From the sequence record KY555145.1: a DNA stretch of 64,000 bases; one strand, given 5' to 3'. The notes under the pieces are model-generated. The model made no database searches. It was given only the letters and a program-made list of their open reading frames with translations, and was not told where the DNA came from. Shown piece by piece: positions 10,004 to 64,000 of this stretch. The translations under genes were made by a program, and so were the position numbers. How positions within the stretch are numbered: position 1 is the stretch's first letter; every line of letters begins with the position of its first letter.

Positions 10004-10004
10004 C

Positions 10005-10502: not shown

Positions 10503-10524
10503 GTCCTTTCCTGGCGCGAAAGTG

Positions 10525-10571: not shown

Positions 10572-10583
10572 AGAGGAGTTCCC

Positions 10584-12637: not shown

Positions 12638-12861
12638 TGCCGCTGTTCGAGCTTTCCGTCACCGCGATCCATCGCGACACCGTCACGATTGAAGCCGATA
12701 GCGAAGCGGAGGCCCGCACCCGCATCCTCGAAGAAGGCTATGCCAACGGGGACGATATCAAGTCGGTTCACCACGATGTCGATCCCGAAATCGAGATCGG
12801 CGACGCGCGCGATGTGACGGACGAGCAATGGATCACCAGCACCTCGGACGAGGAGGACTAG
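12637..12861 (+). CDS. acidic hypothetical protein (MPLFELSV...)
   Basis: TGATG overlap. Confidence 0.75.
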   Translation: MPLFELSVTAIHRDTVTIEADSEAEARTRILEEGYANGDDIKSVHHDVDPEIEIGDARDVTDEQWITSTSDEED

Positions 12862-13368
12862 ATGGCCGACTTCAGCCGCGCCCGCCGGTCCATGGAGACC
12901 GCCGACCTGATCGAGCGCCTCAAGGCCCTCTACGACCTGGAGGACGCCCGCGACATCCCGGACGAGGAGACCAAGAGCGCCTTGAAAGAGGCGGTGGTCC
13001 AACTTGGACAATTGTACGAGCAGGTCGAACTCGGGGAGACCCTCCAGAAGTCCTACCAGAACCTGATCAACTACTACAAGACCGACGCCCTGGCCTCGTC
13101 CCAGGAGCCGGACTTCAAGCGCGCGGCCTGCGAGCTTCACCTGATCGAGTCCTACCCGCCCAGGCTGCGCCTCGCGGTCGGCGGCTTCCGCAAGGCCATG
13201 GACGAGCAAGGCTTCCTGACCGGCGAGACCGGACGGGCGATCAGCCGGCTGATCAGCAAGCATCTCGACCACGATCTGGCGGGGCTGCTGGGGTCCGAGA
13301 TCAATTATTACACGCGTAAGGCTATCGCCGCCTTGCGGGGGTTGGCCCCCGAGGAGCCCAAAGCATGA
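12862..13368 (+). CDS. hypothetical protein
   Basis: GAGGAGG RBS. Confidence 0.8.
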   Translation: MADFSRARRSMETADLIERLKALYDLEDARDIPDEETKSALKEAVVQLGQLYEQVELGETLQKSYQNLINYYKTDALASSQEPDFKRAACELHLIESYPPRLRLAVGGFRKAMDEQGFLTGETGRAISRLISKHLDHDLAGLLGSEINYYTRKAIAALRGLAPEEPKA

Positions 13369-34243: not shown

Positions 34244-34279
34244 CGGCGCGCCGCGCTGTTGCGGCCGTGAGGATTCGGT

Positions 34280-34540
34280 ATGGACAGGCTCAAAGTCAAA
34301 CTCTTCGCCAAGGGGATTCAGACCTCGGCGGAAGCGCTGGTCGATGCGATCGCGACGCTCCCCGACGGTCCGGAGAAGGACGCGGTGGTCGCGGCCGAAC
34401 AGCAGCTTCATGCCCGCCTCAACTGGGGCGCGGCGAAGGCCGGCGAGTTCTTCGGGGACGAATCGATCTCGCTCCTGGCGCGCCGTCGCACCGGCGGCGA
34501 AGACAAGCCGGACGCTCCGGAAGTTCCGCCCGGCGGCTGA
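34280..34540 (+). CDS. 86-aa helical protein with C-terminal RRRTGGEDKP tail
   Basis: GAGGA RBS. Confidence 0.75.
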   Translation: MDRLKVKLFAKGIQTSAEALVDAIATLPDGPEKDAVVAAEQQLHARLNWGAAKAGEFFGDESISLLARRRTGGEDKPDAPEVPPGG

Positions 34541-51487: not shown

Positions 51488-51559
51488 CGAGGCCCGTTAA
51501 CCACGTTTGTTAACCTCCGCCGGGGCCTTAACCCTAACACGGCGAGGGTTAACAGGCCA

Positions 51560-51713
51560 GGGACCCTGGGGAATTAACCCTCCGGGGACCCTTGGAAATC
51601 GAAAGACGGGGACCCTGGGCATTTTCCGCCTGGGGACCCTCCAAAATCCACCGTCGGGGACCCTGGGAAATTCATCTTCCGGGGACCCTGGGAAATTCAA
51701 AGCCGGGGACCCT
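51560..51713 (+). repeat. 7 copies of (G)GGGACCCT at a 24-25 bp period
   Basis: Copies at 51560, 51584, 51608, 51632, 51656, 51681, 51705, each followed by an A/T tract. Confidence 0.9.
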
Positions 51714-51733
51714 GGCGAATCATGGAGCCGACG

Positions 51734-51925
51734 ATGGCCGGATTTCTCAACCTGATCCCGAACCTCGCGCCGTTCGCGCTCTGGGGCGTCCTGCTCTGGA
51801 TCGCGGCCGAGGTCGTCTGGTCGATCAGCCTGTGGGTCTATGGCCTGCGGACCCTGTTCAAGCTGCACCGCGACGATGTGGCCGAGGCCCTGACCCTGGA
51901 GCGGGCTCTGGCACCGTTCGACTGA
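51734..51925 (+). CDS. small membrane protein (MAGFLNL...)
   Basis: GGAG RBS; hydrophobic, Trp-rich core. Confidence 0.6.
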   Translation: MAGFLNLIPNLAPFALWGVLLWIAAEVVWSISLWVYGLRTLFKLHRDDVAEALTLERALAPFD

Positions 51926-51928
51926 CCC

Positions 51929-51956
51929 AAGTCACAGACTGTAGGTTTCATGACAA
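51929..51956 (+). repeat. AAGTCAY-N14-RTGAC motif, copy 1
   Basis: Matches 52235 and, reversed, 59723 and 62365. Confidence 0.7.
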
Positions 51957-51994
51957 GGTGAGATATTTCACAACGATTTCAAGGGCTTATTGCC

Positions 51995-52231
51995 ATGTCG
52001 CTCCGCACGTTCTTCCACGATCTGGCCGTCCGCTTCGTCGTTTTGGGGTGGATTTTTGCCCAAAAACCCCGAAAAACCCCTCCAAAAGGGCATAATTTTC
52101 AGCCCCATCCGCCGGCCCAGGCCCGAGACCCGGACGACATCCTGATCTGGTCGATCTCACTCGCGGCGGCGGCCGTCTGGTTCGCGCTCACAGTCAGGCC
52201 GATTCGTCAAGCCATCTCGACCACCGCCTGA
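51995..52231 (+). CDS. possible small membrane protein overlapping phased A/T tracts
   Basis: ORF track; no clear SD. Confidence 0.4.
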   Translation: MSLRTFFHDLAVRFVVLGWIFAQKPRKTPPKGHNFQPHPPAQARDPDDILIWSISLAAAAVWFALTVRPIRQAISTTA

Positions 52232-52234
52232 CCT

Positions 52235-52262
52235 AAGTCATAGACCGTGGGCTTCGTGACAG
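52235..52262 (+). repeat. AAGTCAY-N14-RTGAC motif, copy 2
   Basis: AAGTCAT AGACCGTGGGCTTC GTGAC. Confidence 0.7.
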
Positions 52263-52490
52263 GATCACGCTTTCGTTACCGCTCCAGCCCTTGTGAGGCC
52301 TCGGATGTTCGCCTTTCTCCGCCGGCTCAGCCTCGCCGCCGTCCATGGCGCGCTCTGGGCGATCCTGCTGGCGATGGTCGCCGTGGGCGGCCCGCGCCGC
52401 GCGCCCTAAAGCGCCATATCTGACGCATAAGGCCCTCTAAGGCCTCATCTGTGAGACATTCAACGCCCTCGTGTTCCTCTGAACGCGGGG

Positions 52491-52603
52491 GCGTTTTGAC
52501 GTCGGCGCGTTTTCGACTTGACGCGCGAGCGTTTTGACGCGGGCGCATTTTTGATTCGACGCGCGAGCGTTTTGACGTCCGCGCATTTTTCAACTTGACG
52601 TCG
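52491..52603 (+). repeat. about 3 degenerate copies of a 38-bp unit with phased T tracts
   Basis: Units start at 52491, 52529 and 52567 (GCGTTTTGACG...GACGCGCGA). Confidence 0.85.
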
Positions 52604-52623
52604 TTTCATTTACCGGGAGCGCC

Positions 52624-52820
52624 TTAGGGTTAACGCCGGCCGCCGAGCCCTGGGGCGATTTACCACCGCAGCGTTAACCTAACGCCTGTTAACCTATCGG
52701 TTGTTAAGGTTAACGCCCCGTTAGGGTTAACGCCCCGTTAGGGTTAACGCCCCTTAACCCTGCGCCCGTTAAGGTTAACGCGCCCCGGCCCCGGCCCAGG
52801 CCGCCGGCGTTAACCTTAAC
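52624..52820. repeat. GTTAAC cluster including the 17-bp tandem unit GGTTAACGCCCCGTTAG
   Basis: 8 GTTAAC sites; 17-mer at 52708, 52725 and partially at 52742. Confidence 0.85.
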
Positions 52821-52842
52821 CGCCAGACCCCCGCGCCCAGGC

Positions 52843-52878
52843 CATACCCGGTAGGGCCTGACGGCCCTACCGGGTATG
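52843..52878. repeat. perfect 16-bp hairpin
   Basis: CATACCCGGTAGGGCC-TGAC-GGCCCTACCGGGTATG. Confidence 0.9.
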
Positions 52879-52940
52879 ACTCCGCCCCGGCCGGGGCCAG
52901 GGACTCGCGCGGCGAGCCCGGCGCTGATTTGCGCCCCGCG

Positions 52941-53000
52941 TTTACGGTTTGTTAACGTCTGGCCTCTAGGGTCGCCCTTGTCCCGGCGCGATCCCGCGCC
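52941..53000 (+). promoter_or_regulatory. CtrA-box promoter with GATCCC-loop hairpin
   Basis: TTTA-CGGTTTG-TTAA-11-TAGGGT; GGCGC-GATCCC-GCGCC. Confidence 0.75.
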
Positions 53001-53019
53001 ATGCAAGGAGCCGCCCGCC

Positions 53020-53205
53020 ATGATCCCCGACTCGATCATGAACCCCCGCGACCATTTCCACCGCCTGCGCGAGGAAACCGCCCGCGCTCTGGTCGAGGCC
53101 TTCGCCGAAACCGACCCCGGCGAGGATTACCGCGCCGAAGAGAAGGCCGGCGCGTGGGTTGTCGCCTATTACGACGAGTCCGGCGCTTTCGTCGCCTATC
53201 TCTAG
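53020..53205 (+). CDS. small hypothetical protein (MIPDSIM...)
   Basis: AAGGAG RBS. Confidence 0.75.
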   Translation: MIPDSIMNPRDHFHRLREETARALVEAFAETDPGEDYRAEEKAGAWVVAYYDESGAFVAYL

Positions 53206-53228
53206 CCGCCTTCGCCCCTGGCGCCGCG

Positions 53229-53260
53229 TTAACGGTTTGTTAACATGTTGGCGCCAGGGT
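53229..53260 (+). promoter_or_regulatory. CtrA-box promoter
   Basis: TTAA-CGGTTTG-TTAAC-10-CAGGGT. Confidence 0.75.
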
Positions 53261-53303
53261 CGCCCTTGCCCGGCGCCGCCGCGCGCCTTCGGAGAAAAGC
53301 CCC

Positions 53304-54107
53304 ATGCTCTACACCCCCGCCGCTCGCCGCCTTCGCGCCTATCGCGAAACCGCCGCGAAGAACGCCGAAATTCACGCCCGCCCGCATATGGCCGGCAACG
53401 TCGCCGGCTATAACGAATCGGTTTGGCCGACGACGGCGCTAGGCGTCGCCGCCAAGGCCGGCGCCTTCAAGCGCCCCGAAACCGCCGGCAACTGGTCGGA
53501 AGATCGCAAGGCCTATCACGCCCCCGCGTGGCCGGCCGGCTGGCGCGTGCTGGGCACGGCCGAAGAGGTCTGCCGCAAGGAAGGATCGCGCCGGGTGGAA
53601 CATTCGGGATGGTACACGACGCCCGACGACTACAGCGCCACCCTTTCGGGCTATGTGCTGCAAATCCCCGCCCGCGACGGGGTCGCCCAATACGTCGCCG
53701 GGGTCGCCCATAGCGAGTTTGACAGGGTCACCGTCTACCCCTCGCGCCGTTTCGACAACCCGCTAGACGCGGCGAGCGCCGCCGACCAAATCGCCGAACG
53801 CGACGCCGAAGAGGAACGCGAATATCAAAGCGCGTGGCAAGCGGGCGTGCGCTTCGCCGAACTGGGCGCCGAGGTCAAGGAGGCCCGCGCCGAAGCCCTG
53901 GCGATCCTTGGCGAGCGCCGCAAGGTCAAGGGGCTGGAAACCCCCGCCTTGTGCGGCGCGATCCGGGCGCAAGTCGAGTCCTTGCTGGAGAAGATCGAAG
54001 AGGCCCGCGCCAAGCGCGACGCCCTGGCGCAAGGCAATGACCCCGGCCTCATGTTCTACCCCTCGCCGCGTCTGGTCGCGGCGTTCAATGAGGGGGCCGC
54101 GTCGTGA
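53304..54107 (+). CDS. hypothetical protein
   Basis: CTTCGGAG RBS; 267 aa. Confidence 0.8.
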   Translation: MLYTPAARRLRAYRETAAKNAEIHARPHMAGNVAGYNESVWPTTALGVAAKAGAFKRPETAGNWSEDRKAYHAPAWPAGWRVLGTAEEVCRKEGSRRVEHSGWYTTPDDYSATLSGYVLQIPARDGVAQYVAGVAHSEFDRVTVYPSRRFDNPLDAASAADQIAERDAEEEREYQSAWQAGVRFAELGAEVKEARAEALAILGERRKVKGLETPALCGAIRAQVESLLEKIEEARAKRDALAQGNDPGLMFYPSPRLVAAFNEGAAS

Positions 54108-54313
54108 GGGTCGCCCGCGATAGCTTCGCCGTGTTCTGGTCGCGTCCTGGCCAGAAATGGGGGTTTCACGCCGACATGAAACGGGCGCTTTACCCGACCC
54201 CCAAAGCCGCCGCCGACGCCTTCCGCGTCATGTTCCCGCGTGACGTGGTTCGGAGCGTCCGCGACGCTTCCGGCCGCTTCCTCGCCTTCAAGGAGTCCGC
54301 CCCGTGCGCCTGA
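54104..54313 (+). CDS. hypothetical protein
   Basis: GTGA overlap; GAGGG upstream. Confidence 0.65.
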   Translation: MRVARDSFAVFWSRPGQKWGFHADMKRALYPTPKAAADAFRVMFPRDVVRSVRDASGRFLAFKESAPCA

Positions 54314-54585
54314 TCAGCTACAACGTCAACGGAACCGGTTTCAAGGGCGGCTCTGCCCCGCCCGCCCCATGCCCTGGCCTCGCCGGTCACGCCGACGACG
54401 CGGGGCTATGGGTTCCCGACCGTGAGACGGTCGCCGCGCTTCTCCCCCGGCGCTGGCGCCACGCCTTCGCCCGCGCGGCGTTTTGGTATGACGCCCGCGA
54501 CAACAAAAAGCCTTGCCGCGCCGACCTCTACGACGCGCGCGGCCGGTACCTGACTCAGGTCTGGGCGCATCCGGTTTTCGCCTGA
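54304..54585 (+). CDS. hypothetical protein
   Basis: GTG after AAGGAG. Confidence 0.7.
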   Translation: MRLISYNVNGTGFKGGSAPPAPCPGLAGHADDAGLWVPDRETVAALLPRRWRHAFARAAFWYDARDNKKPCRADLYDARGRYLTQVWAHPVFA

Positions 54586-54591
54586 CCAGAC

Positions 54592-54617
54592 GCCCCGGAA
54601 AATCTTCCGGGGCATTT
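54592..54617 (+). terminator. probable terminator abutting a CtrA box
   Basis: GCCCCGGAA-AATC-TTCCGGGGC-ATTT. Confidence 0.6.
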
Positions 54618-54674
54618 ACCTTTTGTTAAGGAATGGCCTCTAGGTTAGCCCTTGCCGCCGGGCAATCCCGCCCG
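54615..54674 (+). promoter_or_regulatory. CtrA-box promoter with AATCCC-loop hairpin
   Basis: TTTA-CCTTTTG-TTAA-11-TAGGTT; CGGGC-AATCCC-GCCCG. Confidence 0.75.
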
Positions 54675-54694
54675 CCGCTTCGGAGTTTCGGCCC

Positions 54695-55213
54695 ATGCCT
54701 CAATTCGTTCTGGACACGTCGGGCCAAGTCGCCCCGCCCGCTTCGGCCAAGCTTTGGCCCTATCCCCTCGCTTGGGATCAACTGAGCCCCTTCGCGCAAG
54801 GCTATATCGAGGCCCTGTTTTTCACCGAATCGTCGCTGGCCTATAATCGCGCCGAATGGTTCGGCGCCGAGTGTCAAGAGGCCTTGGAGGAAGGCACGTC
54901 GGGCGGGAACATTCCGGGCGACGTCGGGTTTTCCGACCTCGCGCCCGACACCCTCAACCGCATCTTGAACGATTGCGCCCGCTTCCAACGCGAGCACGCC
55001 GACACCCTGGCCAAGGCCTATAACCACGGGGGCGACGCGGGCGACTATGACGAAACCGCCGCCGGCCGTGATTACTGGTACACCCGCAACGGCCATGGCG
55101 TCGGGTTCTGGGATCGCGGCCTAGGCGAGATTGGCGAGGCCCTGGCCAGCGCCGCCCGCTACAGCGAACAAAACGCCTCTTTTGAAGAGGACGGAAAAGT
55201 CTACCTCTCTTAA
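54695..55213 (+). CDS. conserved phage hypothetical protein (TRNGHG.GFWDR motif)
   Basis: CTTCGGAG RBS; AGRDYWYTRNGHGVGFWDRG. Confidence 0.8.
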   Translation: MPQFVLDTSGQVAPPASAKLWPYPLAWDQLSPFAQGYIEALFFTESSLAYNRAEWFGAECQEALEEGTSGGNIPGDVGFSDLAPDTLNRILNDCARFQREHADTLAKAYNHGGDAGDYDETAAGRDYWYTRNGHGVGFWDRGLGEIGEALASAARYSEQNASFEEDGKVYLS

Positions 55214-55273
55214 CCTTTTGTTAAGACTTGTCCTCTAGGTTTGACTTCGCCGCCGGGCAATCCCGCCCGGCGG
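55210..55273 (+). promoter_or_regulatory. CtrA-box promoter with AATCCC-loop hairpin
   Basis: TTAA-CCTTTTG-TTAA-11-TAGGTT; CCGCCGGGC-AATCCC-GCCCGGCGG. Confidence 0.8.
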
Positions 55274-55296
55274 TCCTCTTCTCAGGATCGCCCCTT

Positions 55297-56349
55297 ATGA
55301 CCTCTCATTCCATGGTTGCGCACCGTTGGGCGCAGGACGACGAGAACGGCCGCACCGCGCGCGGCTTCAACATGTATTTCGAGCGCTACGGACGCGGCGC
55401 CGACCGCGTCAACGTGATTTTTTCCTACGGGACTCACTTCCCGGCCGCCGCCTTCGTGACCGACGCGCACGGCCGCCGCGTGGTCCTCTACACGACGCGC
55501 CGCCGGAGCGTTTCGACCGCGAAACACCTTTCGCATATCCGCTACGCTATCCCGTCGGGCGTGCCGGTGTTTTCCGTGCCGAACGTGTCGCGGATGCACA
55601 AGCCGGGCGGCGCGGGCGACTTCCACGGGGACAACCTGCGCGCCTATATCGAGAGCGCCGCCGGCCTCGCCGAAAAGGCCAAGCGCGCCCGCGTCAACGG
55701 CCCTTGGCTGCTTAGCCAAGCCCGCGACCAACTCGCCGAAGCGCAACGCTACGCCGACGCCTTCAAGGTCAAGGGCTTCAAGGTCCCGGCCTTGGAAGAC
55801 GTCGCCGGCCAATGGGCGAAGATGACGGCCGCCAAGGCGCGGGCCGAAGCCAAGGCCCGCAAGGAAGCCGAAAAGCGCGCCCGCGAAGCCCGCGAAGCCG
55901 AACGGCTCGCCGACGCCGAAGCCTTCGCCGCGTGGATGCGCGGCGAGCGCCAGAGCGCCCCGTTTAGCTACCGGGTGCGCGATGACGGGACCGTCTATCT
56001 TCGCCGCTTCCGGGGCGTGGTCCGCGACCTGCGCAGCCAAGAGCGCGACGGCTCGCGCGTCGATGAACTGCAAACCTCGCAAGGCGCGGCCGTGCCGTGG
56101 GAACACGCGGTCAAGGCCTTCCGGTTCATCAAGCTTTGCCGCGAACGCGGCGAGAGCTTCCACCGCAACGGCCGGGTGATTCGCGTCGGACACTTCCAAG
56201 TTGACGCGATCAGCCCGAACGGGGACATGACGGCCGGTTGCCACCGGTTCGCGTGGGATGAAATCGAACGCATCGCCAGGGCCGAAGGGGTTTTCGACCT
56301 CCCCGCCGACGCTGGCGCCGTCGAAACCCGGCAAGCCGAACCGGCCTAA
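55297..56349 (+). CDS. 350-aa hypothetical protein (MTSHSMV...)
   Basis: ATG after AGGATCG. Confidence 0.8.
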   Translation: MTSHSMVAHRWAQDDENGRTARGFNMYFERYGRGADRVNVIFSYGTHFPAAAFVTDAHGRRVVLYTTRRRSVSTAKHLSHIRYAIPSGVPVFSVPNVSRMHKPGGAGDFHGDNLRAYIESAAGLAEKAKRARVNGPWLLSQARDQLAEAQRYADAFKVKGFKVPALEDVAGQWAKMTAAKARAEAKARKEAEKRAREAREAERLADAEAFAAWMRGERQSAPFSYRVRDDGTVYLRRFRGVVRDLRSQERDGSRVDELQTSQGAAVPWEHAVKAFRFIKLCRERGESFHRNGRVIRVGHFQVDAISPNGDMTAGCHRFAWDEIERIARAEGVFDLPADAGAVETRQAEPA

Positions 56350-56366
56350 GCCTCCCCGCCCCTCTC

Positions 56367-56393
56367 GCGCCCCGGCTCCCCGCCGGGGCGTTT
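56367..56393 (+). terminator. rho-independent terminator
   Basis: CGCCCGGC-TCCCC-GCCGGGGCG-TTTT. Confidence 0.6.
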
Positions 56394-56404
56394 TCGTGTA
56401 CGCG

Positions 56405-56469
56405 GTAACCTTTTGTTAACTTCTGGCTTCTAGGGTGACTTTCGCCGCCGGGCAATCCCGCCCGCCGGC
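56405..56469 (+). promoter_or_regulatory. CtrA-box promoter with AATCCC-loop hairpin
   Basis: GTAA-CCTTTTG-TTAA-11-TAGGGT; GCCG-C-CGGGC-AATCCC-GCCCG-C-CGGC. Confidence 0.75.
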
Positions 56470-56484
56470 CAAGGATCGCAGACT

Positions 56485-56784
56485 ATGAATCTTTTCGTTG
56501 TCGCCATTGACCCCGCCCTCATCCCTTCGGCCGCCGGCTTCGTGGTCGCCTCCCCCTACGGGTGCGGCAAGTGGCGCGCGTGCGTCGGGAGCGAGGCGGA
56601 CATGATCGCGCTTCGCGACAAGATGCGCCGCGCGCACCCGGCCCCGGAAGGCTACAGCGTCCAGCCCCTGGCGTCGTTCCTGGCCTATCTGGAGACGGTC
56701 GGGCAAAGCCCCTACGACCAGTTTCGCGCCCGCGACGCCGCCGCCCGCATCCTTGACACCCTGACAACGCACCTCGCCGCCTAG
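56485..56784 (+). CDS. hypothetical protein
   Basis: ATG after AAGGATCG. Confidence 0.75.
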   Translation: MNLFVVAIDPALIPSAAGFVVASPYGCGKWRACVGSEADMIALRDKMRRAHPAPEGYSVQPLASFLAYLETVGQSPYDQFRARDAAARILDTLTTHLAA

Positions 56785-56790
56785 TCCCGC

Positions 56791-56820
56791 CGCCCCCGGC
56801 CGCGCGCCGGGGGCGCTTTT
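56791..56820 (+). terminator. terminator-like hairpin
   Basis: CGCCCCCGGC-CGCGC-GCCGGGGGCG-CTTTT. Confidence 0.65.
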
Positions 56821-56841
56821 CCCTCGAAAGGATCGCCGACC

Positions 56842-57150
56842 ATGACAACCCGTCTTATCGCCGTGCGCGGCCCGACCGCCGCCGAACTCGCCGACCCGTC
56901 CAGCCGCGCGGGCGGCGCCGAAGTCGTTTTCGAGCGGCGCGACCGCGAAGGCCGCACGCGCCTTGTGTTCGCCGCGACCTGCTACGGCTCATATCAGCAA
57001 TGGGGCGAAACCCGCGACGTGCTCGCCGACAACGTCGAGGCGGTCACGCTCTGGGCCGAAGGCATGGCGGCCGTTGCCGCCCTCATCGACGAGAGCGACG
57101 ACGACGAGGGCGACGACGCCCCGGCCGAAGATGACGACGGGGAGGCGTGA
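56842..57150 (+). CDS. hypothetical protein with acidic tail
   Basis: ATG after AAGGATCG. Confidence 0.75.
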   Translation: MTTRLIAVRGPTAAELADPSSRAGGAEVVFERRDREGRTRLVFAATCYGSYQQWGETRDVLADNVEAVTLWAEGMAAVAALIDESDDDEGDDAPAEDDDGEA

Positions 57151-57153
57151 GCC

Positions 57154-57573
57154 ATGCGCACAACCAAGGCTCAACGCTTCGCCGCCATCGCCTTTGACGC
57201 CCTGGCCAAGGCCCTAAGCGAGCCGCGCCAAGCCGTCGCCCGCGTGACCAAATGGGAGGGCGCGGGCCATAGCTTCGCCAACCTGCAACGCGATTATGAG
57301 CGGTACGGCCCCGGCGCCCGCTCATGGTTCGGCCGGGCTGAAATGCGCTTCTTTGGGACGCGCCTAGAGGCCGCGCCGCTGGATTTCCCGGCGCTGGGCT
57401 GCACCCTCTTTCTGACCTCCGAAACCCCGCCCGGCGCCGGCCGGGTCTGGACCCTTCGCGCCTATGTCTGGGCTTCGGCCGATATCACCACGCTAACCCA
57501 TGGCGACGAAACCGACGCGGCGACCGCGCAAGCGGCCTTTGACCTGCTTTGGCGGGTCCTTTCGCAGCGGTAA
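57154..57573 (+). CDS. conserved phage hypothetical protein (WF...MRFFGTR...FLTSE motif)
   Basis: GGGAGG RBS. Confidence 0.75.
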   Translation: MRTTKAQRFAAIAFDALAKALSEPRQAVARVTKWEGAGHSFANLQRDYERYGPGARSWFGRAEMRFFGTRLEAAPLDFPALGCTLFLTSETPPGAGRVWTLRAYVWASADITTLTHGDETDAATAQAAFDLLWRVLSQR

Positions 57574-57633
57574 CCTTTTGTTAACTTCTGCCCGCTAGGG
57601 TCTTCTTGCGGCCGGGCAATCCCGCCCGGCCGC
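57570..57633 (+). promoter_or_regulatory. CtrA-box promoter with AATCCC-loop hairpin
   Basis: GTAA-CCTTTTG-TTAA-11-TAGGGT; perfect GCGGCCGGGC-AATCCC-GCCCGGCCGC. Confidence 0.8.
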
Positions 57634-57649
57634 TCAAGGATTGGATCGC

Positions 57650-57922
57650 ATGACCCGCGCTCAAGCCCTCGCCGACATGAACGCCCTTCCCGGTATCATC
57701 GCCTCCTTTGAGCGCGAGACGGGTGAATATCGCGTCACCCTGCGCTTTGGCCTGCTCCCCATGGGGCGCGGCGCCCAAGAGTGGATGCACGCGCGCCGCG
57801 AAGCCGTCGCCAGCTACAGCGACGACAAGGCCGACGCCCTGGCCACCGCCCGCGACATGTCCGCCCGCTGGGAGGCGATGAGCGCCGAAGAGCGTTCGCG
57901 CCTCTATCACAACCCCGCCTAA
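57650..57922 (+). CDS. hypothetical protein (MTRAQ...)
   Basis: ATG after AAGGATTGGATCG. Confidence 0.75.
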   Translation: MTRAQALADMNALPGIIASFERETGEYRVTLRFGLLPMGRGAQEWMHARREAVASYSDDKADALATARDMSARWEAMSAEERSRLYHNPA

Positions 57923-57987
57923 AGCCCCCGCGCCGCCCTGGCCTTCGCCGGGGCGGCTCCCTCAACCCCTCGCAAGGATCGCACCCC

Positions 57988-58272
57988 ATGACCGCCCGTA
58001 AGCCCCTGACCAAGGAACAAAAGGCCCGCCGCCGCGCGACCCGTCGCGCCGCCCGCCTCAACTGGTCGGATGAGCGCCGCGCCCGCGAATTCGAGCGTCA
58101 AGCCCGCTTCTTCCTGATGATCGCCACCCGCGCCCAAGGCGCCGGCCAAGGCCGGGAAGCCGCCCGCCTCGCCACGGCCGCACAACGCAAGGTGACTAGC
58201 TGGCGCATGGCGCAAGCCTGCGCCCGAATTAACGCCCTGGCCGCGCATCCTTGGGCGGGGGTCGCCGCCTGA
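57988..58272 (+). CDS. Arg/Ala-rich basic protein (MTARKPL...), copy A
   Basis: ATG after AAGGATCG. Confidence 0.75.
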   Translation: MTARKPLTKEQKARRRATRRAARLNWSDERRAREFERQARFFLMIATRAQGAGQGREAARLATAAQRKVTSWRMAQACARINALAAHPWAGVAA

Positions 58273-58454
58273 TGGCCCGCCGCGTCCGCTACATGCCGTC
58301 CGAAGCTCTGGACCTCGCCGACGCGCTCGGCGAGGGGCTGGACCTCGTCAAGGCGATGAGCGAGGCCCGCCGCGCGGGCGCGCCGATCGCCGACACCCTC
58401 GCCGCCCTCGAAGACTGGGCTTTAACCGCCGTCAACCTCATCGAAGAGGACTAA
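58272..58454 (+). CDS. small hypothetical protein (MARRVRY...), copy A
   Basis: TGATG overlap. Confidence 0.7.
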   Translation: MARRVRYMPSEALDLADALGEGLDLVKAMSEARRAGAPIADTLAALEDWALTAVNLIEED

Positions 58455-58459
58455 ACCCG

Positions 58460-58642
58460 ATGACGCACCCTCACGCCCTGGCGCTGATCGCCCTCGCGGA
58501 AAAGGTGTTGCCGCTTACCCGGCTGCACCCGCTGGACCAACGCGCCGCCGCCGTCGATCTAATCGGCGACCTCTACGCCCTCGCCGACTCCATCGACGCC
58601 GACCCGCAACCCGCCGCCTTGGCGCAACCGAAGGCCGCCTAA
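58460..58642 (+). CDS. small hypothetical protein (MTHPHA...), copy A
   Basis: AGAGGA RBS. Confidence 0.75.
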   Translation: MTHPHALALIALAEKVLPLTRLHPLDQRAAAVDLIGDLYALADSIDADPQPAALAQPKAA

Positions 58643-58645
58643 GCC

Positions 58646-59230
58646 ATGACCGCACGCCCGACCCCCGCCGCCCTTCTCGCCGCGTCCGACACCCTGGCGA
58701 ATTATCTTCGCGGTTCCGCCTCGCATCGCGCCTATCCGGCGCCGGTTCTCGCCGCCCTCGAAGTGCTCGAAGATGAGGGCGCAACCGGCGCCTTTGAGCG
58801 AGGCGACCCGGACTCCGAGCCGACCCCCGGCGCCCTGAAGCTCCTAGCCGGCATGGTTTCGGCCGCCGCGTCCAATGAGGCCGAAATCATCGCCGCGAAC
58901 CTGACCAAATCGGCGACACTGGCCGAAGCCGTGGCCAGTTATGACGCGATGAGCGATCTTGCCGCATGGCTGGAATACCAAGGCGAGGACGCCGCCGCCG
59001 ACGAAATGCGCGGCTATTATCTCCCTCTGGAGGGCGAAGTGAACGCCGCCCGCGCGACGGGGGAAGCCCTCGCCGCCGCGATCAAGCCCGACCCGGACGC
59101 CATGTCACGTCTAACGCAATCGCTCGCCGAATTCGTCGGACCCTCGCGCGCCCTGCAAATCGTTGGCGAACTCCCCGCCGCCCTCAATGACGCGGACCTG
59201 ATTCTAGTCCGCAAGCCCAAGGAGGCTTAG
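58646..59230 (+). CDS. hypothetical protein (MTARPT...), allele A
   Basis: Distantly similar to 61191..61781. Confidence 0.75.
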   Translation: MTARPTPAALLAASDTLANYLRGSASHRAYPAPVLAALEVLEDEGATGAFERGDPDSEPTPGALKLLAGMVSAAASNEAEIIAANLTKSATLAEAVASYDAMSDLAAWLEYQGEDAAADEMRGYYLPLEGEVNAARATGEALAAAIKPDPDAMSRLTQSLAEFVGPSRALQIVGELPAALNDADLILVRKPKEA

Positions 59231-59233
59231 ACC

Positions 59234-59722
59234 ATGCCCCGCGACGTTTCCCGCTTCGCCACCCCTGAAAAGATCATCGGGGGTTACCTCATGACCGCCC
59301 AACGCGACGGGGCCATGACTGAGGCCGCCGACGTCATCGCCACCCTAGAGGCGGCCGGCTATGTGATCGCCCGCCGCCGCGACGTCTACACCGACTCCGG
59401 GGTCAAGTTGGGCGACGCCCTGGCGGCGCTTTACGACGCCGTTCCTAACTACGCCGTGCGCTCGCAACGGCTCGCCGACGCCCTGACCCCGGCGCGGGAT
59501 TACGTCTATCAACCCCGGTTCCGGGTTAAGTTGGACGCCGCCCCCGGCGCGCGCCTGACTGACTGCGAAACCGGCGCGTGCGTCTATTTCCAGCCCGGTG
59601 ACGACGCCGAAGCCTTCCGCGCCCTCTTCGCCCCCTGGCTTCGCGATAACGACGAGACGGGCGACGGTAAGGCCCTGGCCTCGATGATGAACGCCACGGC
59701 CGAAGAATACTTTTCCGGCTAA
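59234..59722 (+). CDS. hypothetical protein (MPRDVS...), copy A
   Basis: AAGGAGG RBS; homologous to 61786. Confidence 0.8.
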   Translation: MPRDVSRFATPEKIIGGYLMTAQRDGAMTEAADVIATLEAAGYVIARRRDVYTDSGVKLGDALAALYDAVPNYAVRSQRLADALTPARDYVYQPRFRVKLDAAPGARLTDCETGACVYFQPGDDAEAFRALFAPWLRDNDETGDGKALASMMNATAEEYFSG

Positions 59723-59817
59723 GTCATCATTCCTACCGTCTATGACTTGTCACCGGCCGAACTCTTGCCCGGTGACAGTCTGGGCAAGTAAAGCTCACTC
59801 TGGATTTTATGACTTAG
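59719..59817. other. structured intergenic element with reversed GTCAY-N14-RTGAC motif and nested inverted repeats
   Basis: CTAAGTCAT (59719) / ATGACTTAG (59809); TGTCACCGG...CCGGTGACA; repeated at 62361-62459. Confidence 0.6.
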
Positions 59818-59903
59818 CGCAAAGGATTGAAATTGCTCGAAAAATTCCTAGAAGCTCACAAAGTCGTTTTCTGGCTGCTCTTGCTGGCCTGTTTGTGGCG
59901 CTT

Positions 59904-59969
59904 TTAACGGTTTGTTAACCCCTGGCCCTCTAGGGTCGAATTCCCGGCGCGGCAATCCCGCCGCCCCGG
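59904..59969 (+). promoter_or_regulatory. CtrA-box promoter with AATCCC-loop hairpin (covariant stem)
   Basis: TTAA-CGGTTTG-TTAA-12-TAGGGT; CCGG-C-GCGGC-AATCCC-GCCGC-C-CCGG. Confidence 0.8.
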
Positions 59970-59990
59970 CCTTCCTTCGGAGCTTCCAAA

Positions 59991-60437
59991 ATGTTCGCTT
60001 CCGTGACCCTTCCCGCCCATGACGCCCAAGGCCTGAGCCTCGAAACCGTCCACATGGTTTTCGCCCGCGAACTGGCGCAACATTTCGACCACGTGACTTC
60101 CGCCCCCGTGGTCGAAAGCTGGACCGACGAGGAAACCGGCGCCGACCACGCGCAAGCCGCCGTCTGCTTCACCGTTTCGGCGACCCCGGCCGCGTGGGAA
60201 GCCAAGGGCGGGCGGCTCGCGCGCCGGCTGGAAAACCTCGCCGCGCGCTATGCCGCCGACTGCGACGCCCCGGCCCTGACTGTCACCCATTGCGACGGGC
60301 AAACGGTCTATGTCGGCGCTCTGGAAGCCCTGGCGCGCCCCGCTCCGGTGCAAGGCCCGACCCGCGACGCGGACCCGGCTTTCCTCCCCCGCCAGCGTGA
60401 GGACAAGGCCGCCCGCTTCGATCGCCTGACCGCCTAG
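59991..60437 (+). CDS. hypothetical protein (MFASVTL...), copy A
   Basis: CTTCGGAG RBS. Confidence 0.8.
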   Translation: MFASVTLPAHDAQGLSLETVHMVFARELAQHFDHVTSAPVVESWTDEETGADHAQAAVCFTVSATPAAWEAKGGRLARRLENLAARYAADCDAPALTVTHCDGQTVYVGALEALARPAPVQGPTRDADPAFLPRQREDKAARFDRLTA

Positions 60438-60453
60438 CCCCTGGCCTTCCCCT

Positions 60454-60487
60454 AGCGCACCGCCCCTAGAAAGGCGGTGCGCTTTTC
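60454..60487 (+). terminator. rho-independent terminator (duplicated at 63096-63129)
   Basis: AGCGCACCGCC-CCTAGAAA-GGCGGTGCGCT-TTT. Confidence 0.8.
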
Positions 60488-60495
60488 TGTGTCTG

Positions 60496-60528
60496 TTTAC
60501 TTGTTGTTAAGGAATAGCCTGCTAGTGT
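60496..60528 (+). promoter_or_regulatory. CtrA-box promoter, leader removed at the duplication junction
   Basis: TTTA-CTTGTTG-TTAA-12-TAGTGT, then directly TTG of the next gene. Confidence 0.7.
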
Positions 60529-60532
60529 CTCC

Positions 60533-60817
60533 TTGACCGCCCGTAAGCCCCTGACCAAGGAACAAAAGGCCCGCCGCCGCGCGACCCGTCGCGCCGCCCG
60601 CCTCAACTGGTCGGATGAGCGCCGCGCCCGCGAATTCGAGCGTCAAGCCCGCTTCTTCCTAATGATCGCCACCCGCGCCCAAGGCGCCGGCCAAGGCCAG
60701 GAAGCCGCCCGCCTCGCCACGGTCGCACAACGCAAGGTGACAAACTGGCGCATGGCGCAGGCCTGCGCCCGGATTAACGCCCTGGCCGTGCATCCTTGGG
60801 CGGGGGTCGCCTCCTAA
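60533..60817 (+). CDS. Arg/Ala-rich basic protein, copy B (TTG start, no RBS)
   Basis: Near-identical to 57988..58272; ATG and SD replaced at the junction. Confidence 0.55.
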   Translation: MTARKPLTKEQKARRRATRRAARLNWSDERRAREFERQARFFLMIATRAQGAGQGQEAARLATVAQRKVTNWRMAQACARINALAVHPWAGVAS

Positions 60818-60999
60818 TGGCCCGCCGCGTCCGCTACATGCCGTCCGAAGCTCTGGACCTCGCCGACGCGCTCGGCGAGGGGCTGGACCTCGTTAAGGCG
60901 ATGAGCGAGGCCCGCCGCGCGGGCGCGCCTATCGCCGACACCCTCGCCGCCCTCGAAGACTGGGCTTTAACCGCCGTCAACCTCATAGAAGAGGACTAA
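60817..60999 (+). CDS. small hypothetical protein (MARRVRY...), copy B
   Basis: TAATG overlap; identical protein. Confidence 0.7.
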   Translation: MARRVRYMPSEALDLADALGEGLDLVKAMSEARRAGAPIADTLAALEDWALTAVNLIEED

Positions 61000-61004
61000 A
61001 CCCA

Positions 61005-61187
61005 ATGACGCACCCTCACGCCCTGGCGCTGATCGCCCTCGCCGAAAAGGTGTTGCCGCTTACCCGGCTGCACCCGCTCGACCAACGCGCCGCCGCCGTC
61101 GACCTAATCGGCGACCTCTACGCCCTCGCCGACTCCATTGACGCCACCCCGCAAGCCGCCGCCCTGGCGCAACCGAAGGCCGCCTAA
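61005..61187 (+). CDS. small hypothetical protein (MTHPHA...), copy B
   Basis: Near-identical to 58460. Confidence 0.75.
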   Translation: MTHPHALALIALAEKVLPLTRLHPLDQRAAAVDLIGDLYALADSIDATPQAAALAQPKAA

Positions 61188-61190
61188 GCC

Positions 61191-61781
61191 ATGAACCCGA
61201 ACCGCTACCGCCTCGCGCCCCGCGACCGCTTCAGCCGCGAGCTTGCCGAAACGCTCTATCAGGCGGCCGAAGCCGTCGCCCGCGTGATTCCGCTAGTGCC
61301 GGAGTCCGTCCCCGATGAGCGCCGCGCGCTGGGCAAGGTCCGCGCCGACCTGCTAACCCATAGCGCCGGCGCCCTTGTTCCCAAGCCGCCGGCCGCCGTG
61401 CTCGCAACCCTCGTTTGGGTTGTCGAGATGGCGCAAGATCGCGCGACCAACGCCGATTTCAACACCGCCCAAGAGGGACTCGACGAACACGAGTCCCTAG
61501 CCTTTGTCGCCGACTGGCTGGAAGCCGAAGGCCAGGACGTGACGCCGATTCGCAACGCGCAACCGTCCGCCGACGCCCTGGCCGAACTCGCCGCCCGTCG
61601 CGACGCCGAACAAGAGGCGCTAGACGCCTTGGAGGCCGCCGCCCTGGCCGAAGCGCCGGGCGACGTGATCACCGAAGCCTTGCGCCCCTATCTGGGCGCC
61701 ACCCTGGCCGAAAACCACGCCGACGACGTGCTAGACGCCCTCACGCGCGCCGGCTTCCAAATCACCCGCAAGGAGGCTTAA
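61191..61781 (+). CDS. hypothetical protein (MNPNRY...), allele B
   Basis: Same slot as 58646; shares the A(D/A)WLE..G.D segment and KEA end. Confidence 0.75.
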   Translation: MNPNRYRLAPRDRFSRELAETLYQAAEAVARVIPLVPESVPDERRALGKVRADLLTHSAGALVPKPPAAVLATLVWVVEMAQDRATNADFNTAQEGLDEHESLAFVADWLEAEGQDVTPIRNAQPSADALAELAARRDAEQEALDALEAAALAEAPGDVITEALRPYLGATLAENHADDVLDALTRAGFQITRKEA

Positions 61782-61785
61782 GACC

Positions 61786-62364
61786 ATGTCCCGCGCCGTT
61801 TCCACCTTCGCCACCCCTGAAAAGCTCATCGGGGGTTACCTCATGTCGGCGGCCCGTCACGGGGCCATGACCGAAGCCGCCGAAGTCATCGCCACCCTAG
61901 AGGCGGCCGGCTATGTGATCGCCCGCCGCCGCGACGTCTTCACCGATGAGGGCGAGAAGCTGGGCGACCTGTTGGCGGCGCTTTATGACGCCGTCCCGAA
62001 CTACGCCGTAAGATCGCAGCGCCTCGCCGACGCCCTCAAGCCGGCGCGAGACTACGTCTATCAGCCCCGGTTCCGGGTCAAGCTGGACGCCGCGCCCGGC
62101 GCGCGCCTGACCGACTGCGACACGGGCGCAACGGTCTATTTCCAGCCGGGCGACGACGCCGACGCCTTCCGGGCCGAATTCGCCCCGTGGGTTCACGACG
62201 CCAATGTGACGGCCGAAGGCGCGGCCCTGGCCTCGATGATGAACCCGACGGCCGAAGAGTATTTCAGCGCCAGCGGGGAAGATGACGACTTGCCCGGCGC
62301 GCTTTCCGCCTTCGATTCCGCCGGCTCCGGCCAAAGACTGGGCTACGTTCGCCCGCCTCGCTAA
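61786..62364 (+). CDS. hypothetical protein (MSRAVS...), copy B with C-terminal extension
   Basis: AAGGAGG RBS; homologue of 59234 plus 30 aa. Confidence 0.8.
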   Translation: MSRAVSTFATPEKLIGGYLMSAARHGAMTEAAEVIATLEAAGYVIARRRDVFTDEGEKLGDLLAALYDAVPNYAVRSQRLADALKPARDYVYQPRFRVKLDAAPGARLTDCDTGATVYFQPGDDADAFRAEFAPWVHDANVTAEGAALASMMNPTAEEYFSASGEDDDLPGALSAFDSAGSGQRLGYVRPPR

Positions 62365-62545
62365 GTCATCATTCCTACCGTCTATGACTTGTCACCGGCC
62401 GAAGTCTTACCCGGTGACAGTCTGGGCAAGTAAAGCTCACTCTGGATTTTATGACTTAGCGCAAAGGATTGAAATTGCTCGAAAAATTCCTAGAAGCTCA
62501 CAAAGTCGTTTTCTGGCTGCTCTTGCTGGCCTGTTTGTGGCGCTT

Positions 62546-62611
62546 TTAACGGTTTGTTAACCCCTGGCCCTCTAGGGTCGAATTCCCGGCGCGGCAATCC
62601 CGCCGCCCCGG
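62546..62611 (+). promoter_or_regulatory. CtrA-box promoter with AATCCC-loop hairpin (duplicate of 59904)
   Basis: Offset 2642. Confidence 0.8.
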
Positions 62612-62632
62612 CCTTCCTTCGGAGCTTCCAAA

Positions 62633-63079
62633 ATGTTCGCTTCCGTGACCCTTCCCGCCCATGACGCCCAAGGCCTGAGCCTCGAAACCGTCCACATGGT
62701 TTTCGCCCGCGAACTGGCGCAACATTTCGACCACGTGACTTCCGCCCCCGTGGTCGAAAGCTGGACCGACGAGGAAACCGGCGCCGACCACGCGCAAGCC
62801 GCCGTCTGCTTCACCGTTTCGGCGACCCCGGCCGCGTGGGAAGCCAAGGGCGGCCGGCTCGCGCGCCGGCTGGAAAACCTCGCCGCGCGCTATGCCGCCG
62901 ACTGCGACGCCCCGGCCCTGACTGTCACCCATTGCGACGGGCAAACGGTCTATGTCGGCGCTCTGGAAGCCCTGGCGCGCCCCGCCCCGGTGCAAGGCCC
63001 GACCCGCGCGGCGGACCCGGCTTTCCTCCCCCGCCAGCGCGAGGACAAGGCCGCCCGCTTCGATCGCCTGACCGCCTAG
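62633..63079 (+). CDS. hypothetical protein (MFASVTL...), copy B
   Basis: One residue differs from 59991. Confidence 0.8.
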   Translation: MFASVTLPAHDAQGLSLETVHMVFARELAQHFDHVTSAPVVESWTDEETGADHAQAAVCFTVSATPAAWEAKGGRLARRLENLAARYAADCDAPALTVTHCDGQTVYVGALEALARPAPVQGPTRAADPAFLPRQREDKAARFDRLTA

Positions 63080-63137
63080 CCCCTGGCCTTCCCCCTAGCG
63101 CACCGCCCCTAGAAAGGCGGTGCGCTTTTCTGTGTCT

Positions 63138-63203
63138 GTTTACTTGTTGTTAAGGAATAGCCTGCTAGTGTCTCCTTGTCGGCGGACGCATCCCGCGCCC
63201 GCC
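63138..63203 (+). promoter_or_regulatory. CtrA-box promoter with ATCCC-loop hairpin
   Basis: TTTA-CTTGTTG-TTAA-12-TAGTGT; GGCGG-A-CGC-ATCCC-GCG-C-CCGCC. Confidence 0.75.
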
Positions 63204-63222
63204 CCTCTCTGGATCGCTCCCC

Positions 63223-63615
63223 ATGGCCCGCCCCTCTGACCTGCTCAACGTCAACGCCGCCCGCGTCCTGGCTTGCCTTGAGCCTATCGCCGCCGCCGCT
63301 AAGACGGCCCCGGCCGCCGACCGCGCCGCCCTTTCCTACCTGCTCGACGCTGGCGAGTATGTCGCCGCGTGGCGCCGCAACCTCACGGAAACCGACCGCC
63401 GCAAGGCCTATGGCGCGGCCTGCGCCGCCGAAGCCCTGGCGCTCGCCAACGCCTATCAGCCCGCCACCCTGCAAGGCGGCGCCGTCCGCCGCGCTCTGGG
63501 CGCCTATGCCGCCGCCCTAAAGGTCCTGCTAGACGGGGAGCCGGTCAAGGCGGTGCGCGCCGCCGAAGGCGCGGCGCTTTCGGTCCGCGCCCGCTACGCC
63601 AACACCCGCCTTTAA
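63223..63615 (+). CDS. Ala-rich hypothetical protein
   Basis: ATG after TGGATCG. Confidence 0.75.
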   Translation: MARPSDLLNVNAARVLACLEPIAAAAKTAPAADRAALSYLLDAGEYVAAWRRNLTETDRRKAYGAACAAEALALANAYQPATLQGGAVRRALGAYAAALKVLLDGEPVKAVRAAEGAALSVRARYANTRL

Positions 63616-63643
63616 CCTCTTGTTAACACCCCCCGGCTATGGT
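63612..63643 (+). promoter_or_regulatory. CtrA-box promoter
   Basis: TTAA-CCTCTTG-TTAA-11-TATGGT; inverted repeat CCCCCCGG/TCGGGGGG around the -10. Confidence 0.75.
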
Positions 63644-63669
63644 CGGGGGGTCGCAAGGAGACACCCGAC

Positions 63670-63864
63670 ATGACCCGCCCCGGCCCCGCCTCGCTCTTGA
63701 CCCCGCAAGCCCGCTTCTCGTCGTCGCGCGTCCTGATCCTTCCGGGCGCGGCGCCTATGCCGATTCGCCAGCCGCGCGGCCTTAGCGCCGTCGAGTGCGT
63801 CGCCCTTGGCGTGACGCTGGGCGCGGCGCTCTACCTCGCCGCCCGCGTGTTCGGTCTGGTCTGA
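63670..63864 (+). CDS. small protein with C-terminal TM helix
   Basis: AAGGAG RBS; VALGVTLGAALYLAARVFGLV. Confidence 0.7.
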   Translation: MTRPGPASLLTPQARFSSSRVLILPGAAPMPIRQPRGLSAVECVALGVTLGAALYLAARVFGLV

Positions 63865-63875
63865 CCAGACCCCCG

Positions 63876-63901
63876 CCCCGGCCCTACCGGTAGGGCCGGG
63901 G
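63876..63901. repeat. perfect 26-bp palindrome related to the 52843 hairpin
   Basis: CCCCGGCCCTACCGGTAGGGCCGGGG, preceded by CCAGACCCCCGC as at 52823. Confidence 0.9.
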
Positions 63902-64000
63902 GTGTGTCCCATAATGAGACACCCCCCGCCACCTAGTATCTTTTTTGATTCGGAGGGACCCAAAGGCCCCCTACGTTAACCATTTTTCGCGGCGCCCCCC

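Follow-up and report, generated by a model that had tools for sequence, protein, structure and literature searches.

A conserved dyad family at cistron borders of phiCbK-like phages and its polar members in the terminal repeat of Caulobacter phage Ccr29

The conserved inverted repeats (CIRs) of Streptomyces phage phiC31 are bound by a phage repressor, and the stoperators of mycobacteriophages L5 and Bxb1, which are 13-bp asymmetric sites aligned with transcription, are thought to halt elongating RNA polymerase. In dif (Xer) and loxP (Cre), inverted arms enclose a short asymmetric center within ~28 bp, and the Cre/loxP system of P1 serves cyclization from within the terminal redundancy. Stable stem-loops located right past stop codons are known from T7 RNase III sites, repetitive extragenic palindromic (REP) elements and the Rhodobacter puf hairpins. 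In this study, we describe a 24-bp dyad, GTCAY-N14-RTGAC, that recurs in a 64,000-nt stretch of sequence record KY555145.1 (the window), i.e., the final 64 kb of the genome of Caulobacter phage Ccr29, where it occupies the direct terminal repeat (DTR). The dyad is a real and conserved family of cis-elements of phiCbK-like phages that is apparently undescribed.

As with the phiC31 CIRs, a short, phage-specific dyad is repeated at many intergenic places of the phage and presumably has one phage-encoded reader. However, phiC31 is temperate and its reader is known, whereas phiCbK-type phages are virulent, their sites are 24 bp long with a fixed 14-bp interior, and a polar subclass is restricted to the terminal repeat. 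The many copies, lying in short intergenic spaces near stop codons, within transcription units and off promoters, are reminiscent of the L5/Bxb1 stoperators, although here one site (C) opposes two others (A and B) and most members are palindromic. The arms, asymmetric center and length also resemble dif and loxP, a recombinase is encoded by the same phages and, as in P1, sites lie within the terminal redundancy; unlike those systems, which have one or two sites per genome, the dyad has nine, its innermost arm bases vary and no recombination product was found. Similar to intercistronic hairpins, the symmetric members form stable stem-loops right past stop codons, within operons of highly expressed genes and with compensatory changes. 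In contrast to such hairpins, the base of the stem is invariant in sequence over loci and genera, the length is fixed, and A, B and C have no stable stems. Finally, the CtrA boxes of these phages share the terminal repeat and the same intergenic regions with the dyad but differ from it in sequence.

Window positions 51000-56000 are 100% identical to positions 292-5292 of Ccr29 (KY555145.1), and also to Ccr10. The Ccr29 record annotates a DTR at 1-13292, and the GTCAY-N14-RTGAC matches are seen again at record positions 217250-227707. Considering the identity, the annotation and the recurring matches, the window ends in the right DTR of Ccr29 (Table 1), and each DTR site therefore has an identical twin in the left repeat. 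According to the record, all DTR genes are transcribed from left to right. The window contains four exact matches to the pattern, compared to a chance expectation of 0.14 in dinucleotide shuffles, and four or more matches were reached in none of 100 shuffles. An earlier note on this DNA, made from the letters of the window alone, had described four copies in two orientations just past stop codons, with a core AGACNGTRGG and extra CTAAGTCAT half-sites at 59809 and 62451. These descriptions were borne out: the four copies are where the note put them, the core is present at exactly these four sites on the strands it gave, every site begins 0-5 nt after a stop codon, and both half-sites are present on the minus strand. 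The copy count needs qualification, however, since the third and fourth copies are a single site that was doubled when 2,642 bp were duplicated in tandem; 99% identity between the duplicates begins at 59718, the left edge of site C. Consequently, only three sites (A, B and C) are independent. Site A lies 5 nt past the gp002 stop and 40 nt ahead of the next open reading frame (ORF); site B lies 5 nt past the stop of the ORF at 51995-52231 and 32 nt ahead of gp003; and site C starts directly behind the TAA stop of gp018. All DTR sites are polar hybrids, composed of one strong half (GTCAC-GAWWC) and one lineage-specific variant half (GTCAT-AGAC in Ccr29; GTCAC-AGAC in site A).

Table 1. Members of the dyad family in Ccr29 and neighboring elements. 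Numbers are window positions.
Feature	Position	Strand	Description	Basis
Right DTR of Ccr29	50709-64000	+	13,292 nt; contains all four copies	
Site A	51929-51956 (24-bp core 51931-51954)	+	Left variant half GTCAC-AGAC, right strong half GTTTC-ATGAC	
Site B	52235-52262 (core 52237-52260)	+	GTCAT-AGAC ... CTTC-GTGAC	
Site C	59721-59748 (core 59723-59746)	-	Polar site reversed relative to A and B; strong half left	
Site C'	62363-62390 (core 62365-62388)	-	Copy of C from the 2,642-bp tandem duplication	
Sites D' and D			Between gp073 and major capsid gene	Ccr29 and phiCbK annotations
Site E			Between gp082 and giant lectin-like gene	Ccr29 and phiCbK annotations
Site F			6 nt ahead of tail-tube start codon	Ccr29 and phiCbK annotations
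Site G			7 nt past tail-tube stop codon	Ccr29 and phiCbK annotations
Site H		Other strand	8 nt ahead of start of RecE-like exonuclease gene	Ccr29 and phiCbK annotations
Hairpin GTCACCGG ... CCGGTGAC	59749-59776, copy 62391-62418	+	Same arms, spacing 18; starts 2 nt past site C	
Orphan half-site GGATTTTATGACTTAG	59802-59817, copy 62444-62459	+	Corresponds to CTAAGTCAT on the minus strand	

Beyond the four copies in the terminal repeat, the family has six further members elsewhere in the genome. Scanning the whole Ccr29 record gave additional exact matches at 34228, 40168, 61252, 63122 and 97588, plus an intragenic one at 27540 that we took as chance, and a half-site scan added a site at 34088 (D') whose right arm is one base off. 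When the arms were relaxed to one mismatch, D' alone was gained and the background was higher. In the non-repeated 216 kb, a spacing of 14 gave 10 matches versus 0-4 for each other spacing from 0 to 40, and an everted control pattern showed no peak in the same spacing scan. Altogether, Ccr29 has nine distinct sites (A, B, C, D', D, E, F, G and H), all of them intergenic. Those outside the DTR read GTCAC-GAWWC-N4-GWWTC-GTGAC, and the symmetric members are palindromes with 10-bp stems that adjoin the capsid, giant lectin-like and tail-tube genes. The polar form is confined to the terminal repeat and is thus present in two direct copies per virion DNA. For five of the six family sites located in intergenic regions of at least 140 nt, an ORF edge lies no more than 8 nt away (product of chance terms, 1.6e-5).

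All eight places are occupied in phiCbK, Karma, Rogue and BL10, and site A has orthologues in these four phages and in Bajun. The capsid and post-tail-tube sites are kept in Colossus, CcrPW and uncultured relatives, and there each clear site in the genome carries flipped inner arms (GTTTC...GAAAC). The DTR sites reach deeper, to Bajun (terminase 68% identical), Bertelyvirus (44%), and Marchewka and Kikimora (52-54%), where sites lie a few hundred bases beyond terL and more are found 9-20 kb off; Marchewka, for example, has A/B-like sites just beyond terL and a distant cluster. In alignments of three regions, the 24-mers form invariant islands between flanks that are poorly conserved out to Bajun. 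A, B and C hold their place and polarity in all Dolichocephalovirinae lineages that were scanned, and the order and orientation of the sites (A+, B+, C-) were identical wherever they were examined in detail. Since terL-proximal sites are variant-strong and distal sites strong-variant in Shapirovirus, Poindextervirus, Bertelyvirus, Bajun and Kikimora, in which the halves were read, the strong halves point into the repeat interior. The variant half is uniform across the DTR sites of one lineage and different between lineages (AGAC in Ccr29, AGGT in Bajun, AGTT/AGAT in Bertelyvirus, CYTTG in Kikimora). The core AGACNGTRGG, described in the earlier note as conserved, holds in Shapirovirus only; site B of Rogue and BL10 keeps AGAC alone, and Bajun reads AGGT at that place. 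Site B lies ~1.5 kb from the left repeat border. In phiCbK, Ccr29, Rogue and BL10, the distance between site C and the right border is 1,606-1,612 bp.

The motif is therefore present in relatives, where the earlier note had taken its absence as grounds for rejection, and it appears to be specific to these phages. Exact matches to the symmetric form occurred in 16 stretches among 2.9 million viral contigs, 13 of which are phiCbK-like DNA as judged by contig identity or by tblastx to Ccr29; the other three (L111, L115 and L118) are non-palindromic and without homology. Lacusarx and DSS3P8, which lie outside the subfamily, have the dyad at background level only. As in phiC31 and L5, one short site occupies many intergenic regions of the phage and is absent from the host-family genomes searched: no symmetric-type site with two or fewer mismatches was found in five Caulobacteraceae genomes (19 Mb; C. 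vibrioides not included), and a host regulon motif was rejected on this basis.

As RNA, the polar sites fold weakly, and A and B no better than shuffles. Site A has a folding energy of -5.7 kcal/mol (z -0.25) and site B of -7.1 kcal/mol (z -0.26), while the plus-strand RNA of C pairs over 8 bp around a loop of 14 nt (-7.9 kcal/mol, z -2.5). Sites F (z +0.32) and H (z -0.63) likewise fold no better than shuffles, and still keep their arms and spacing. Inspection for U-tracts found no T-run behind any site, and no Rfam match was obtained at any site in 50700-64000 at E values up to 1. Canonical U-tract terminators are nevertheless part of this phage: a consensus scan placed some in other parts of the DTR, but none of them has a full site as its stem, and only a weak call at 52255-52269 overlaps a site, in the right arm of B. 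Contigs assembled from four RNA-seq runs of a phiCbK-like infection extend from terL through A and B, showing that both are transcribed, and break near 52452-52484, close to a terminator-like site (52452-52546) and to a terminator annotated in phiCbK. Coverage was examined at A and B, and contigs of this kind cannot reveal partial termination. In these contigs, the alignment restarts at 52235 (site B) behind a replaced 116-nt stretch. Since a stable G+C-rich stem and a U-tract are both absent, A, B and C are unlikely to be intrinsic terminators. The earlier note's own caveat, that the motif might be only a terminator hairpin, runs counter to the missing U-tract, the unstable A/B stems and the contigs running through A and B.

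We tentatively propose, at a probability of roughly 0.4, that A, B and C are double-stranded DNA sites for a putative phage-encoded protein controlling transcription at cistron borders. The putative protein, perhaps a dimer, would read the sites as double-stranded DNA; the sites would mark cistron borders with their strong halves facing the repeat interior, and they might act as operators or road-blocks on transcription across those borders, by analogy with the phiC31 CIRs and L5 stoperators. We infer three things here, namely recognition at the DNA level, a reader encoded by the phage and an effect on transcription. Since all genes run rightward and C is inverted, A/B and C would yield different sense RNAs. 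Recognition as DNA is ranked ahead of recognition as RNA because A and B lack a stable fold, C is inverted, the variant half changes in concert, and F and H keep the motif with no better fold than shuffles. Also in line with the proposal are the fixed spacing of 14, the invariant 24-mers amid variable flanks, the near restriction of the symmetric form to phiCbK-like DNA and its absence from five Caulobacteraceae genomes, the orphan half-sites in putative promoter regions and the U-tract terminators that the DTR has elsewhere. The earlier note had suggested a recombinase, resolvase or terminase site. Of this suggestion, a polar DNA site read by a protein agrees with the lack of a hairpin at A and B, the missing U-tracts, the polarity that is preserved irrespective of the direction of transcription, the concerted variant half and the presence of a tyrosine recombinase among the core genes of the group; a recombinase or terminase site is unlikely as the general meaning of the family, since recombination at the members beside the capsid and tail-tube genes would be lethal.

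Several observations weigh against the DNA-site proposal. No reader protein was found, and the DTR proteins carry no Pfam DNA-binding domain except for a faint winged helix-turn-helix (wHTH) match in gp018 (E 0.07). Strong hairpins are formed by D', D, E and G, with energies between -12.5 and -19.2 kcal/mol and z scores between -4.3 and -8.2, and the symmetric members show compensatory stem changes. Their pairing amounts to 82.6% versus 68.7% in shuffles, with the pairing or covariation score reached by none of 500 shuffles; pairs 7-18, 8-17 and 9-16 of the 24-mer each have 11-12 double changes in 30 sequences, alternating among AU, UA and CG. Pair 6-19 shows five G-U and zero A-C on the sense strand, and the single mismatches of near-perfect stems, though too few to be decisive, are G-T in five cases and A-C in one. 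Compensatory pairing of this kind, typical of a conserved structured RNA family, does not hold for A, B and C. Sigma-70-like promoters (GTCGTGAATC-TTGACA-N17-TAGGGT) lie upstream of the symmetric members, which are thus internal to transcription units, and no overlap of sites with recognizable promoters was found. Site F, for instance, falls in the tail-tube leader and not in the promoter, being ~50 nt downstream of the latter. Moreover, the close placement of a start or stop codon at five of the six long-spacer sites is not predicted by an operator model. Lastly, right past the tail-tube stop, where Ccr29, Rogue and Colossus have a GTCAC-type hairpin, Bajun (L130) and CcrSC (L131) have hairpins of unrelated sequence that are G+C-rich, perfect and without a U-tract, and an RNA role is therefore favored for the symmetric subclass. 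The symmetric hairpins may well work at both the DNA and RNA levels.

These findings make an RNA element the chief alternative for the whole family, i.e., stem-loops closed by GUCAY/RUGAC that would stabilize, process or attenuate mRNA or tune its translation after recognition by an RNA-binding protein or a nuclease of phage or host origin. The stable folds of D', D, E and G, the covariation at stem positions 7-9 and the G-U bias of pair 6-19 speak for it, as do the location of all sites within transcription units, the codons adjoining the long-spacer sites, the bracketing of the tail-tube gene by F and G, the unrelated hairpins at the G position of Bajun and CcrSC, and the coverage of A and B by RNA contigs. 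We nevertheless consider it doubtful, since A and B are not stable hairpins and C is a weak one, the inversion of C relative to A/B would place the complement of the core in its sense RNA and, in Bajun and CcrSC, a C-A mismatch in its closing stem, and the concerted change of the variant half extends to the inverted site. Template switching can also give DNA palindromes compensatory changes, or make their arms uniform, with no selection acting on RNA, and the opposite orientations of the loop of E in Karma and Ccr29 agree with such a process; an Rfam match is lacking as well. A different kind of polar signal tied to the repeat, such as looping of the borders for end formation, a replication barrier or loading site at an origin, or a T5-like injection-stop region, could conceivably account for the opposed A/B and C with inward strong halves in every lineage examined in detail, for the distances of B and C from the borders, and for the additional GTCAC-armed repeats and half-sites behind C. 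However, this is improbable given that the constant distance follows from conservation of the intervening genes and that members far off, at the capsid, tail-tube and exonuclease genes, misfit a repeat-specific role. Least probable is that the sites have no function and represent chance, duplication remnants or ordinary rho-independent terminators: terminators are indeed common behind stop codons and copies 3 and 4 are a duplication, but four matches were never reached in the shuffles, orthologous sites persist where the terminase is only 44-68% identical, and A and B combine an unstable stem and a missing U-tract with RNA contigs that pass on to the terminator-like site at 52452-52546.

The polar DTR sites could instead be core sites of a tyrosine recombinase, with the repeat copies recombining to circularize the injected genome or resolve multimers, as Cre/loxP does in P1. 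The candidate enzyme is a 208-aa protein, gp145 of Ccr29 (gp143 of phiCbK; record 118753-119379, L005 4753-5379), a core gene product of the Dolichocephalovirinae that consists of a catalytic domain alone, with a complete Phage_integrase match (E 6e-20) and RxxE, HxxR, GH and tyrosine-containing motifs that line up with XerA (4A8E). With the flanking AA/TT, each of A, B and C comprises an 11-bp arm, a 6-bp asymmetric center and a second 11-bp arm. This 11-6-11 arrangement is the dif/XerA layout, and the polar form is found only in the terminal repeat. A 16-mer resembling the strong half is located 32 nt upstream of the recombinase gene, and the variant half is AGAC where the recombinase is 78-100% identical and different where identity is 45% or less. 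The phages with this recombinase are virulent and have terminal repeats of ~10-24 kb. Gill et al. (2012; PMC3556154) name no target of the recombinase, propose a requirement for an accessory protein and describe the enzyme as having no N-terminal DNA clamp domain. In one elaboration, the role of this clamp domain would fall to an accessory protein bound to the invariant GTCAY arms, recombination between left and right repeats would circularize the injected genome or resolve multimers, and the symmetric late-gene sites would bind the same accessory protein without recombining. Recombinase targeting nonetheless seems unlikely, and this elaboration slightly more so. No product was seen, either in the collinear repeats of six relatives or as a joint at A or B in the RNA contigs; three sites per repeat exceed the need; and single-copy members stand at essential late genes. 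D and H have the same central six bases in direct orientation, such that their recombination would delete 63 kb, and the bases adjoining the center are the least conserved, unlike those of known core sites. Further, Lacusarx and DSS3P8 have the enzyme without a clear motif, and co-occurrence of two core features proves nothing. The inversion between opposed sites envisaged in the earlier note fares no better. The repeats of phiCbK, Rogue, BL10, Bajun, Colossus and CcrSC align with that of Ccr29 only collinearly (minus-strand matches were 38-71 nt), the joint-free contigs agree with this at A and B, and the central six bases differ, with four of six agreeing between B and C (minus strand) and five of six between A and C, the latter diverging more in Rogue and Karma. 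The catalytic-domain-only recombinase is also a core gene of relatives of the Lacusarx, DSS3P8 and Erythrobacter phage types, and all phages of these groups, the Dolichocephalovirinae included, are regarded as virulent.

Returning to the DNA-site proposal, several potential readers were considered and set aside. The faint wHTH match of gp018 was the only indication of DNA binding among the DTR proteins, and its AlphaFold model (predicted local distance difference test score, 41) was unusable. Regulator motifs described for phiCbK are the CtrA boxes and the sites of the XRE-type protein TgrL (PMC9437464, PMC10688885). The chromatin immunoprecipitation sequencing matrix of TgrL (S2 Table of PMC10688885) has a C-A-A-C/G-C core and a weak second half, with neither GTCAC nor GTGAC. 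CtrA boxes (TTAA-N7-TTAAC) occur at 53229, 59904, 62546 and 63612, away from the sites, one of them being ~160 bp to the right of site C. A phage RNA polymerase acting at hairpin promoters found no backing in the five large uncharacterized proteins that were scanned, none of which had a polymerase-like match. When searched by terms, McLaughlin et al. (2023; PMC10688885) and Mascolo et al. (2022; PMC9437464) yielded only CtrA and XRE motifs and no mention of the dyad, and term searches of Gill et al. (2012) and of the Lacusarx paper (PMC5648845) yielded nothing relevant to it. A full-text search for six diagnostic 10- and 11-mers returned unrelated primers only, most subscription journals being outside the search.

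Elements related to the dyad adjoin site C. The hairpin that follows it (Table 1) contributes to a fold of 59717-59782 with an energy of -21.7 kcal/mol (z -3.15) and is kept in Rogue and BL10 with altered stem bases. The orphan half-site further downstream reads TTTCGTGACATAG, i.e., the strong half, in Rogue and BL10, and a 15/16 match to it is found at record 118705-118720, 32 nt upstream of the tyrosine recombinase gene; as judged from sequence, the orphan half-sites lie in putative promoter regions. Nearby lies an ORF of 26 codons (59827-59907, copy 62469-62549) that is missing from the annotation, starts with TTG and is hydrophobic in its second half. Rogue and BL10 retain this ORF, most of the differences being synonymous or conservative, and its TAA stop falls within the CtrA box at 59904-59919. 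To the right of site A, a block of ~35 nt (51955-51995; GATATTYCACA...TCA...GCTTA) is conserved out to Brevundimonas phage Bajun. The tandem duplication of gp014-019 (57986-63183) is a mosaic, its copies being 99% alike to the right of site C and 85-96% alike with indels to the left, where one is BL10-like and the other phiCbK-like. The terminal repeat also contains some nine copies of an intergenic module of ~65 nt (L001 ~2513, 3903, 4502, 5694, 6859, 9197, 9774, 11839 and 12417; add 50708 for window positions). Copy 9197 and its duplicate 11839, the only ones checked, contain a CtrA box. Mascolo et al. (2022; PMC9437464) studied repeated early promoters, with which these modules may be identical.

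Other observations concern the surroundings of the symmetric sites. Promoters of the GTCGTGAATC-TTGACA-N17-TAGGGT type are located at Ccr29 record positions 33162, 52448, 55765, 61172 and 84912 (L003, L004), and the same family is present at loci L014, L110, L112, L117, L119, L130 and L131. Colossus, Bajun and CcrSC share with Ccr29 the promoter ahead of the tail-tube gene. In many cases, the -35 element is adjoined by a GANTC (CcrM methylation) site, which may link these promoters to the phage GcrA homologue (window 3206-3754, minus strand). Behind site D, upstream of the capsid gene, there is a stem-loop AATTCCCTCGG ... CCGAGGG (L003 20252-20300; record 34252-34300), which is kept in Colossus (L014 1650-1700) with changed inner bases. 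The phiCbK capsid gene is annotated to start inside this AATTCCCTCGG stem-loop, ~100 nt upstream of the start calls in Ccr29 and Colossus.

Cell-cycle research in Caulobacter uses phiCbK as its standard phage, and yet little is known of how this phage orders its own gene expression. A conserved, phage-specific dyad at the cistron borders of the capsid gene, the tail-tube gene and the terminal repeat in all subfamily lineages scanned points to an unrecognized trans-acting reader, for which exact probes are now available. The polar DTR sites also give the orphan tyrosine recombinase, encoded by phages that are virulent, its first concrete candidate targets, and their polar, inward-facing arrangement offers a testable clue to how the long repeats are used or made.

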